Positions 216 through 2,960 of a stretch of 64,000 nt of DNA are shown here, piece after piece. The notes under the pieces were generated by a model that ran no database searches, had not been told where the DNA came from, and was given only the letters and a program-made list of their open reading frames with translations. Position numbers and translations under genes: made by a program. Position 1 is the first letter of the stretch. Each line of letters opens with the position of its first letter. Origin of the DNA: Zygnema circumcarinatum SAG 698-1b (lineage: Eukaryota > Plantae > Zygnematophyceae); contig CM074815.1 in the NCBI GenBank assembly GCA_037447605.1, positions 124,001 through 188,000 of the forward strand, written 5' to 3'.

Positions 216-2960
216 ATGCGACCTTGTTTCCCTCGGCCAAATATCTGACGCTGAAGACATCATAGAAAGGGAGACCGGCGGCTCGACCCGTTCCGTGCGA
301 ACCCGGTTCTGTTCAGTTCCGTTGGACCTAGTTCTCAGTATTGCTCCAACGGTGGCTCCGCCGCCTCTCACGGCCACGTCAGCAGATGGCTTTTTGTCTC
401 ACGAAGCCTGCAACTCTGACTTGAAGGGTCCAGTTTTGAACAAATTTTCGACCGACCATTCAGCGGTTTCTTCTCCCTCAAAAAGAAGAGAAGGAAGTCG
501 GAAAATCACTTCGGACTCCATTTCAGGTAAAAAAGACACAAAAAGGAAAAAAAATACTTGCTGCCTTCACATTTCATCCAAGAACAGTTTTTTCGAATTT
601 TGGTAGACTCCTTCTCTGAACCGATTTCTTATTTTAACTGTCGTTTTTTGCGCAGGATCTCAAATTCACGAAGCGGACGGGTTTTCGTCGACAGTTGTTG
701 CCATCTCCGGCCCTTTGTCTTTGCGGAATTTTCAGCATTTCGTGGTGCATAATATTCGTAATGCAAAAGGACTACTACGAGCGAAGGGGCTGCTGTGGTT
801 TACGGAACATAGGTAGACACGAGTTCATCTTACGGCCGGGAAGATTCCAGATTTTCAGGAGCTTTAGGTCTTTTCTGTGGTAGAGGAATTGAATCTCTCT
901 CTCTCTTTCTCTCTCTCTCTCTCTCTCTCTCTCTCTCTCTCTCTCTCTCTCTCTCTCTCTCTCTCTCTCTCTCTCTCTCTCTCTCTCTCTCTCTCTCTCT
1001 CTCTCTCTCTCTCTCTCTCTCTCTCTCTCTCTCTCCTACCTCTCTCTCTCTCTCTCTCTCTCTCTCTCTCTCTCTCTCTCTCTCTCTCTCTCTCTCTCTC
1101 TCTCTCTCTCTCTCTCTCTCTCTCTCTCTCTCTCTCTCTCTCTCTCTCTCTCTCTCTCTCTCTCTCTCTCTCTCTCTCTCTCTCTCTCTCTCTCTCTCTC
1201 TCTCTCTCTCTCTCTCTCTCTCTCTCTCTCTCTCTCTCTCTCTCTCTCTCTCTCTCTCTCTCTCTCTCTCTCTCTCTCTCTCTCTCTCTCTCTCTCTCTC
1301 TCTCTCTCTCTCTCTCTCTCTCTCTCTCTCTCTCTCTCTCTCTCTCTCTCTCTCTCTCTCTCTCTCTCTCTCTCTCTCTCTCTCTCTCTCTCTCTCTCTC
1401 TCTCTCTCTCTCTCTCTCTCTCTCTCTCTCTCCTCTCTCCTCTCTCTCTCTCTCTCTCTCTCTCTCTCTCTCTCTCTCTCTCTCTCTCTCTCTCTCTCTC
1501 TCTCTCTCTCTCTCTCTCTCTCTCTCTCTCTCTCTCTCTCTCTCTCTCTCTCTCTCTCTCTCTCTCTCTCTCTCTCTCTCTCTCTCTCTCTCTCCTCCTC
1601 TCTCTCTCTCTCTCTCTCTCTCTCTCTCTCTCTCTCTCTCTCTCTCTCCTCTCTCTCTCTCTCTCTCTCTCTCTCTCTCTCTCCTCTCTCTCTCTCTCTC
1701 TCTCTCTCTCTCTCTCTCTCTCTCTCTCTCTCTCTCTCTCTCTCTCTCTCTCTCTCTCTCTCTCTCTCTCACCTACTCTCTCTCTCTCTCTCTCTCTCTC
1801 TCTCTCTCTCTCTCTCTCTCTCTCCCTCCTCCCTCCTCTCTCTCTCGCTCTCTCTTTCTCACTCTCCCTCTCTCTCTCTCTCTCGACTTGTTTCCTTTTT
1901 CCTTCGCATGCAGGCGGACACGGTTTGTTTTTCAGTACAGCGGAAACCGGCGTGCAGAACTGACTGCCAGCTGGCAATGGGAAAGCTCCCCTGGCACACG
2001 CCTTGTTCTGATTGGCCGAGACCCGGCTGAGCTGGCAGCGCTTAAAGACGGTCTTCTTCAGACAGTCAGCTCCGAATCAAGCACGCAAGAAACGGAAAAA
2101 AGAGAAAATGACGGGCAGGGAGGAGCGGAAGTATCAATTAGAACGGTCGCAAACGAAGAGAAATATGTGTACGGGAATAGGGACGAAGAAGAAACTTCTT
2201 TGCTTGAAGGTAACGATATTGAGGAGGCGGCCCGGCTACGGAATCACATTGGTGGGGATGAGCGGTTTAAGGTGCGAACTATGTGTGTTAAATGTAACAG
2301 TAATCAAAACCCTTTTTGCTTCTTTTGTGCTTCTTCCTTTTCTCCTTCTTCTTTTCCATCTGTTCGCATGTCATGCATTTTAGGGGCAGGGGCGCAGCTC
2401 TTTGAATGGGAGGCATCTGGTTTGCTGCGAGAAACCGGCGGAGAAAGTGAAAACTTTTTGCCCCCGGAAATGAGAGCGGTGGTGCTCTTCGGCCTGAAGG
2501 GCTCGCCTTTGAAAGGGCTCTCAGAGGTGAGTTGGGTTTTAGGGTTCTTTATTCCTTTGCGTTGAAGAAAACCACGAGAACTACCCGCTGGCATTGCCAT
2601 TTTCACGATTTGCTTTCTGAGCTCATTTCTGTTATGGTTGTTTCCTCCTCCAGGAAACTTTAAATGCTGATCTCATGCGGGCAGCGAATAGCAGAGGGAG
2701 GCTTTTTCTGTCGTGTGCATCTCCAGCTCGAGGTGTGAACATGGAGCCGCAAGCCTACTTTCTGATGGGAACTGCTAAAGAACGAATACAAAATATTGAG
2801 AGATTTTAAAGTTGAAATCTAACATTTCTGGTGGTCTGCAGTCCGTTTGCAGCTCGCCTTGGGGAAAGGTCTGACTGCTGAAGCAGCCTGGGAAGAAATA
2901 CAAGTTTGTGCGACAAAAATATTGAAAAAAGCGTACGCTAATATTTGTCCCTGCAGGTGA
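216..2960 (+). CDS. 3' part of a COG0523/CobW-family (G3E) metallochaperone GTPase with CobW_C domain and a C-terminal PLP-decarboxylase-like small domain; 5' end lies outside the window
   Basis: Phase-compatible GT-AG exons 216-526, 656-812, 1914-2271, 2398-2526, 2654-2732, 2842-2960. Exon 1 reads (K)[16 protein letters not shown] (NKxD G4 region). Exons 2-3 read [19 protein letters not shown] and TRLVLIGRD, typical of CobW_C. The final TGA overlaps a possible donor, so the last few residues are uncertain. Confidence 0.8.
894..1884. repeat. ~1 kb (CT)n microsatellite inside a CobW intron
   Basis: Near-perfect CT dinucleotide run with rare interruptions; it generates the spurious poly-ER/poly-LS ORFs. 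Confidence 0.98.

Follow-up and report, generated by a model that had tools for sequence, protein, structure and literature searches.

A Viridiplantae-wide family of probable COG0523 metallochaperones with an appended decarboxylase-type small domain

A gene at the start of the stretch of Zygnema circumcarinatum SAG 698-1b DNA that we analyzed (assembly GCA_037447605.1, contig CM074815.1, positions 124,001–188,000 of the forward strand; 64,000 nucleotides, here called the window) encodes a protein in which a predicted CobW-type GTPase domain and a CobW_C domain are followed by a module of about 125 residues that resembles the C-terminal small domain of aromatic amino acid decarboxylases (AAADs). 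We conclude that this combination of CobW with a decarboxylase small domain is real, old, conserved and undescribed. The protein very probably belongs to a Viridiplantae-wide subfamily of COG0523 (CobW-type, G3E) metallochaperones distinguished by the appended domain. The window opens inside the gene, which lies on the + strand, and holds the 3′ half of what is an expressed gene. Its features are given below in window coordinates; four-digit P numbers denote related proteins.

216–528, + strand: exon for the end of the GTPase domain (K-CDLVSLG, G4 NKxD region) and the start of the variable linker with its conserved GFLSHE (from translation); by BLASTP it matches P0008 207–275 (E 1e-20) and P0012 188–252.
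656–812, + strand: exon for the first half of CobW_C (Pfam PF07683/IPR011629 at 658–810, E 3.4e-5, above cut-off, profile positions 1–41), joined in RNA to 1914.
813–1913, + strand: intron containing a (TC)~500 microsatellite at 894–1884 (Tandem Repeats Finder), removed in contigs of X1 and X19.
1914–2271, + strand: exon for the second half of CobW_C (to ~2058), an acidic low-complexity linker (~2059–2217), and module helix 1 with the start of strand 1 (2218–2271); the Pfam CobW_C match runs over 1915–2271 (E 2.8e-3, profile positions 45–90), alongside alignment and RNA contigs.
2398–2526, + strand: exon that spans a variable loop, then strand 2 (AVVLFGLKG) and SPLKGLSE, a loop specific to the family; joint 2271/2398 in four runs; matches P0008 462–489 and P0015 419–441.
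2654–2732, + strand: exon for helix 2 and strand 3 (RLFLS); joint 2526/2654 in four runs; matches P0014, P0013, P0005 and P0012 at E ~1e-5.
2842–2956, + strand: exon for strand 4 (VRLQLAL), the last helix and the first residues of the Cys motif (ICPC-R); joint 2732/2842 in four runs; matches P0012 503–538 (E 9e-11).
2957–3361, + strand: intron with donor GTGAGC enclosing a TGA at 2958–2960; joint 2956/3362, GT..AG, in four of four runs.
3362–3413, + strand: final coding piece, (R)CDISPHMGATHNHHQH and the TGA stop at 3411–3413, which completes CPCRCD and adds a His-rich tail (from translation); motif kept in P0005, P0008 and P0012–P0015.
3414–3854, + strand: 3′ untranslated region with AATAAA at 3618 and TGTAA at 3817; contigs end at 3643 (X19) and 3854 (X15), and the true 3′ end cannot be fixed from contigs.

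The transcript evidence comes from contigs of four runs on the same organism (X1, X15, X16 and X19) from three studies (P1, P8 and P9), over window 1905–4400. Spliced contigs occur in each run, and all four are therefore RNA; every intron of the gene is bounded by GT..AG. A preliminary description of this DNA had predicted the junctions 2271/2398, 2526/2654 and 2732/2842, which the contigs of all four runs reproduce exactly, and the peptide blocks that it had likened to group II decarboxylases lie in the frames and exons to which it assigned them. Rather than ending before 2398 or using another frame, outcomes that the description had named as possible refutations, the contigs run spliced through to 3643 and 3854. 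Because a loose contig end at 1912 reads window 781–810, we join 812 to 1914 across the 1.1-kilobase (TC)n intron. Record 17 of X19 (2008 nt) has 1044 nt upstream of 1912 and extends downstream to 3643; it spans both parts, which places the CobW exons and the module on one mRNA. Almost the whole of intron 813–1913 is a (TC)n microsatellite (~500 units, 991 bp, 95% matches) that is precisely spliced from an expressed gene.

At the 3′ end, the gene model departs from the preliminary description, which had placed the stop at 2958–2960. That TGA lies inside the donor CAG/GTGAGC and is spliced out in four of four runs (2956/3362). Because the GT at 2957–2958 is a splice donor, the real open reading frame runs 16 codons further to the TGA at 3411–3413; the protein end proposed earlier was thus 17 residues short (one split codon plus 16 codons) and missed the conserved CPCRCD/His tail. 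The encoded C terminus reads ...ICPCR-CDISPHMGATHNHHQH and ends at 3413. RNA depth within intron 2957–3361 is about zero in the two bins nearest the donor (2997–3080) and in the last full bin (3249–3332); the higher depth at 3081–3248 sits on a GA-rich repeat.

An exhaustive phmmer search for relatives gave nine proteins, and a later region search added four. They include the following.

P0005: Chara braunii GBG60429.1, 570 residues.
P0008: Mesotaenium endlicherianum ME000286S04873, 575 residues.
P0003 and P0004: two Closterium gene models.
P0012: the liverwort Calypogeia fissa, 554 residues.
P0015: Amborella AMTRI_Chr07g82200, 515 residues.
P0007: Scenedesmus sp. PABB004 KAF8063826.1, 713 residues.
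Fragments: metagenome and Logan.

All seven window exons are collinear with these orthologues, falling on P0008 at residues 207–275, 313–361, 365–473, 462–489, 491–513, 530–562 and 564–574. The architecture, which the preliminary description had proposed to look for in streptophytes and chlorophytes, was recovered in streptophytes and in the chlorophyte Scenedesmus. The Scenedesmus module is homologous to that of Chara (E 2e-9), and the fusion of CobW and module therefore dates back at least to the chlorophyte/streptophyte split, barring transfer. The C-terminal CPCR(C/S)D followed by histidines aligns in six proteins and in the window, and Closterium P0003 has SSCRCD at this point. Three of the gene models show irregularities. 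In P0007, annotated 'yciC', the last helix and Cys tail are replaced over ~545–713 by a long Ala/Lys-rich extension with basic clusters, which could stem from fusion of a downstream gene or from a wrongly called intron. P0004 (CAI5500082.1) repeats the segment TSGLADPQPIAAQLMEAGVRLDRVVAVV and stops within the module, and P0008 carries a Ser-rich insertion in the Walker B region; both are probably gene-model errors. We dropped P0002 (1524 residues, 15 repeated stretches) as a relative, as it matched the low-complexity acidic linker only.

By Pfam, the complete family members all have cobW plus CobW_C. The GTPase profile PF02492 is found in P0005, P0007 and P0008 at E 1e-36 to 1e-43 (hmmscan) and also in P0012, P0013 and P0015 (precomputed Pfam). 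The orthologues score E 1e-13 to 1e-14 for CobW_C (hmmscan), and the PF07683 matches on both window exons bear out the placement of CobW_C upstream of the module. Common to the orthologues are the motifs GFLGxGKTTL, ETSG and NKCD, and the metal-binding CxCC occurs as GC(A/P/V)CC in the Chara, Mesotaenium, Calypogeia, Amborella and Scenedesmus proteins. The family scores stay under the cut-off of the NCBIfam equivalog in each of three cases, ZigA, CobW and YjiA. Two short conserved motifs lie outside the known domains in P0005, P0008, P0012, P0013, P0015 and P0004: N-x-M-S-L-x-x-E just before the P-loop (alignment columns 20–30) and, in the otherwise variable linker, G-(F/V)-(L/M)-S-H-E (alignment columns ~350–360), of which the window version is ADGFLSHEA at ~382–408.

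To characterize the module, we predicted its structure with AlphaFold2 from P0008 residues 432–575 and a seven-row alignment (predicted local distance difference test score, pLDDT, 74; predicted template-modeling score, pTM, 0.70). The model has the order helix-strand-strand-helix-strand-strand-helix. In a Foldseek comparison of this model with the Protein Data Bank (PDB), ranks 1–46 are all group II pyridoxal phosphate (PLP) decarboxylases, with a best E of 3e-4 and top matches that include human AADC, rice and Catharanthus TDC, Arabidopsis PAAS, HDC and TyDC, and unrelated folds first appear at rank 47. VIA-align superposes the module on the C-terminal small domain of human AADC (383–480) with a Z score of 14.4 and a root mean square deviation of 1.8 Å over 97 residues at 28% identity. 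The Z scores descend from the AAAD/HDC clade (12–14) through bacterial group II enzymes (11–12) and GAD (~11) to NifS (~10, 7% identity), and the AAAD/HDC clade comprises the closest relatives of the module, at 21–28% identity. In an ESM Atlas shape search, 8 of the 10 rows were decarboxylase clusters, the others being a hypothetical protein and an 'aminotransferase family' fragment that bears Pyridoxal_deC.

Sequence comparison leads to the same enzymes. When a profile of 11 module sequences was searched against all PDB sequences, the top 11 matches were all of AAAD type; the best was human AADC (E 0.0027), on which the alignment covers 385–400 and 405–476, within the small domain. A shallower profile of seven sequences gave one weak match in the PDB (6eew, E 0.44), phmmer with the 43-residue exon gave none among PDB sequences, and a word-index search with the P0008 module region returned P0008 alone. 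Pfam has no family for the module, on either the window exons after CobW_C or the isolated modules, and NCBIfam has none; automatic Gene3D/InterPro calls may already mark the small domain. The similarity of the module to decarboxylases is far above chance. Predicted fold and sequence together support the homology of the module (~125 residues) to the AAAD-type C-terminal small domain, and on the orthologues Foldseek, VIA-align and the profile search back the orphan decarboxylase small domain that the preliminary description had proposed. The structural check that it had called for, run on the Mesotaenium protein, yielded the expected DDC-type matches.

The fold (α/β, with a four-stranded antiparallel sheet plus helices) and element order of the module are those of the small domain of AADC/DDC, HDC and plant TDC, TyDC and PAAS, and the blocks D-x-RF, LV-x-F-x-L-x-G, N-x-x-L, F/I-L, L-x-L/F-A and W-x-x-I are common to the module and group II decarboxylases. 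Features specific to the module are a longer loop between strands 1 and 2, an insertion of four to five residues (PL-x-G-I/V-HE) after strand 2 and a last helix that continues into the Cys/His tail. Unlike the decarboxylases, the protein has no N-terminal or large domain, PLP lysine or catalytic loop. The spacer between CobW_C and the module consists of only 20–60 low-complexity residues, and neither the window exons nor the full-length orthologues match PF00282, even with E values as high as 10 allowed, in agreement with the earlier observation that no PLP-binding large domain intervenes. For the orthologues, this absence is a third test, independent of fold and profile, in favor of an orphan small domain. 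With no PLP domain, the protein is therefore not a decarboxylase, and we rejected that assignment.

The family shares with ZNG1, ZNG2, ZigA, YjiA and CobW the cobW GTPase (P-loop, CxCC, NKxD) followed by CobW_C. ZNG1 and ZNG2 as described lack its C-terminal domain of ~125 residues and its CPCRCD/His tail, and the N-terminal N-x-M-S-L-x-x-E motif likewise sets the family apart from known COG0523 proteins. Arabidopsis has only ZNG1, ZNG2A1 and ZNG2A2 as nucleotide-dependent metallochaperones (NMCs) (PMC10642216), so that ZNG1 is present there and this family is not. The architecture of ZNG1 orthologues ends at CobW_C; the additional domain and the absence of the family from Arabidopsis therefore do not fit ZNG1 orthology. 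A closer parallel is Chlamydomonas CBP1, which consists of CobW, CobW_C and a WW domain and binds the zinc protein CCM1 (PMC12891040). It resembles the present family as a green-lineage COG0523 protein with an acquired C-terminal interaction domain, but it belongs to another clade (NKID, no AAAD-like module), its appended domain is WW and it is confined to Chlorophyceae and Trebouxiophyceae (PMC12891040). By analogy, CBP1 provides a precedent, showing that green-lineage COG0523 proteins can gain C-terminal docking domains.

Zhang et al. (2023) described an uncharacterized, small Streptophyta cluster of plant NMCs, 'cluster 4', with members in Charales, Klebsormidiales, Marchantiales, ferns and some angiosperms and with related chlorophyte proteins (PMC10642216). 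Its patchy taxonomy is that of the present family, although the identity of the two could not be confirmed; the supplements of that paper gave no cluster 4 accessions or motifs, and its text mentions a decarboxylase-like domain zero times (PMC10642216). Fusions are not mentioned in the COG0523 survey of 2009. In the literature library searched, we found no paper pairing COG0523 with aromatic amino acid decarboxylase and none describing a fusion of CobW with the decarboxylase small domain, consistent with the earlier suggestion that the architecture had not been characterized.

What the module does can be framed as a possible mechanism, which we put forward tentatively. Because the protein belongs to COG0523, a divalent metal, zinc or another, would be bound at CxCC and released to a client under GTP control, as in other COG0523 proteins. 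In decarboxylases, the small domain packs on the large domain through its sheet face. In the orphaned module, this face would be free to bind something new, whether a client, another subunit or the body formed by GTPase and CobW_C. The exapted small domain may then serve as a protein–protein platform that docks a client or dimerizes, with the conserved family-specific loop PL-x-G-(I/V)-HE after strand 2 as a candidate contact site, and the flexible Cys3/His tail on the last helix (CPCRCD plus histidines) could be a second metal-capturing or hand-off site. We liken this tail to the CXC tail of the copper chaperone CCS and to the His-rich tails of HypB and UreE; the His-rich stretches of ZNG2 are also comparable (PMC10642216). 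The fullest version of this proposal, a Viridiplantae subfamily about a billion years old in which the AAAD-derived domain recognizes a client, either a metalloprotein or a PLP enzyme, and the CPCRCD/His tail is the hand-off arm, has a low probability.

Several points weigh against the reading developed here. Metal, client, oligomeric state and tail function are all inferred in our reading. The P-loop and CxCC exons lie upstream of the window, which includes only the end of the GTPase domain (CDLVSLG), and the structure predictions were made on the Mesotaenium and liverwort orthologues rather than on the window's own joined protein. The full-length AlphaFold2 model of the liverwort orthologue is of moderate confidence (pLDDT 64, pTM 0.58, tail below 50), such that module packing and tail position are not readable from it. 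Finally, the Scenedesmus gene model has neither the last helix nor the Cys motif, which may reflect an error in the model or a real difference.

Other explanations of the module fare less well than its use as a protein–protein platform. It is improbable that the module senses a small molecule (amino acid, amine or PLP) and thereby tunes the GTPase. Descent from an amino-acid-metabolizing enzyme would suit such a role, as would the family-specific and highly conserved loop SPLKG-I/V-HE after strand 2, which could form a pocket, but group II decarboxylases are known from textbooks to bind PLP and substrate through the large domain and the partner subunit, the corresponding residues are absent here and no Pfam ligand-binding family was detected. 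Of the two roles considered for the module, docking and ligand sensing, the latter is the weaker, since PLP and substrate contacts are made mostly in the large domain. We assign a similarly low probability to an action in trans on a PLP enzyme, whereby the module would complete a truncated fold-type-I protein or would mimic or compete for an AAAD interface, coupling metal status to amine metabolism. The closest relatives are specifically of the AAAD/HDC clade, and a hetero-oligomer of complete and truncated fold-type-I proteins is reported for Ser4/Ser5 (PMC11726168); AAADs, however, are not metalloenzymes.

It is very improbable that the module survives as a neutral leftover of an old gene fusion, functionless in itself. 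Two parts of it do vary, the long strand 1–strand 2 loop and the stretch preceding the last helix, as would fit such a relic, but from chlorophyte to Amborella the family keeps the core, PL-x-G loop and CPCRCD tail, and the window matches the family in seven of seven exons. An artefact, in which a CobW gene was wrongly joined to a decarboxylase pseudogene fragment or the resemblance arose by chance, has a negligible probability: in each of three studies, single spliced RNA contigs cover both CobW_C and module exons and rule out a two-gene origin, the same architecture recurs in gene models of at least six other species, and fold and profile evidence speak against chance similarity.

Clients of COG0523 proteins have been established in very few cases (ZNG1–MetAP1 and CBP1–CCM1). 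If the module docks a client of this probable metallochaperone, the appended interaction domain and the second conserved metal motif would offer two direct handles on a new one, and if that client proves to be a PLP enzyme, metal supply would be linked to amine or amino-acid metabolism. The family is also a clean case of the small domain of a fold-type-I PLP enzyme persisting without its catalytic domain, unannotated in Pfam. Tractable liverworts have it but Arabidopsis has lost it, a possible reason why it has escaped notice.

Further features of the locus concern the transcripts and the flanking DNA. Unspliced contigs (over 2242–2412, 2498–2681 and 2703–2869) cross the three short introns in X15, X16 and X19; they are shallower than the spliced forms, except for the 2703–2869 piece in X16, and reflect either intron retention or some DNA in the libraries. 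Purine-rich (GA/GGA) imperfect repeats lie at 3050–3200, in the last intron, and at 3880–4140, in the 3′ flank past the mapped untranslated region. These repeats draw pieces of many other RNA contigs, producing depth spikes to ~840, loose ends and false joints, and look like a dispersed family of GA-rich elements transcribed elsewhere. The gene that follows, on the minus strand, is a DnaJ gene that starts near 4453.

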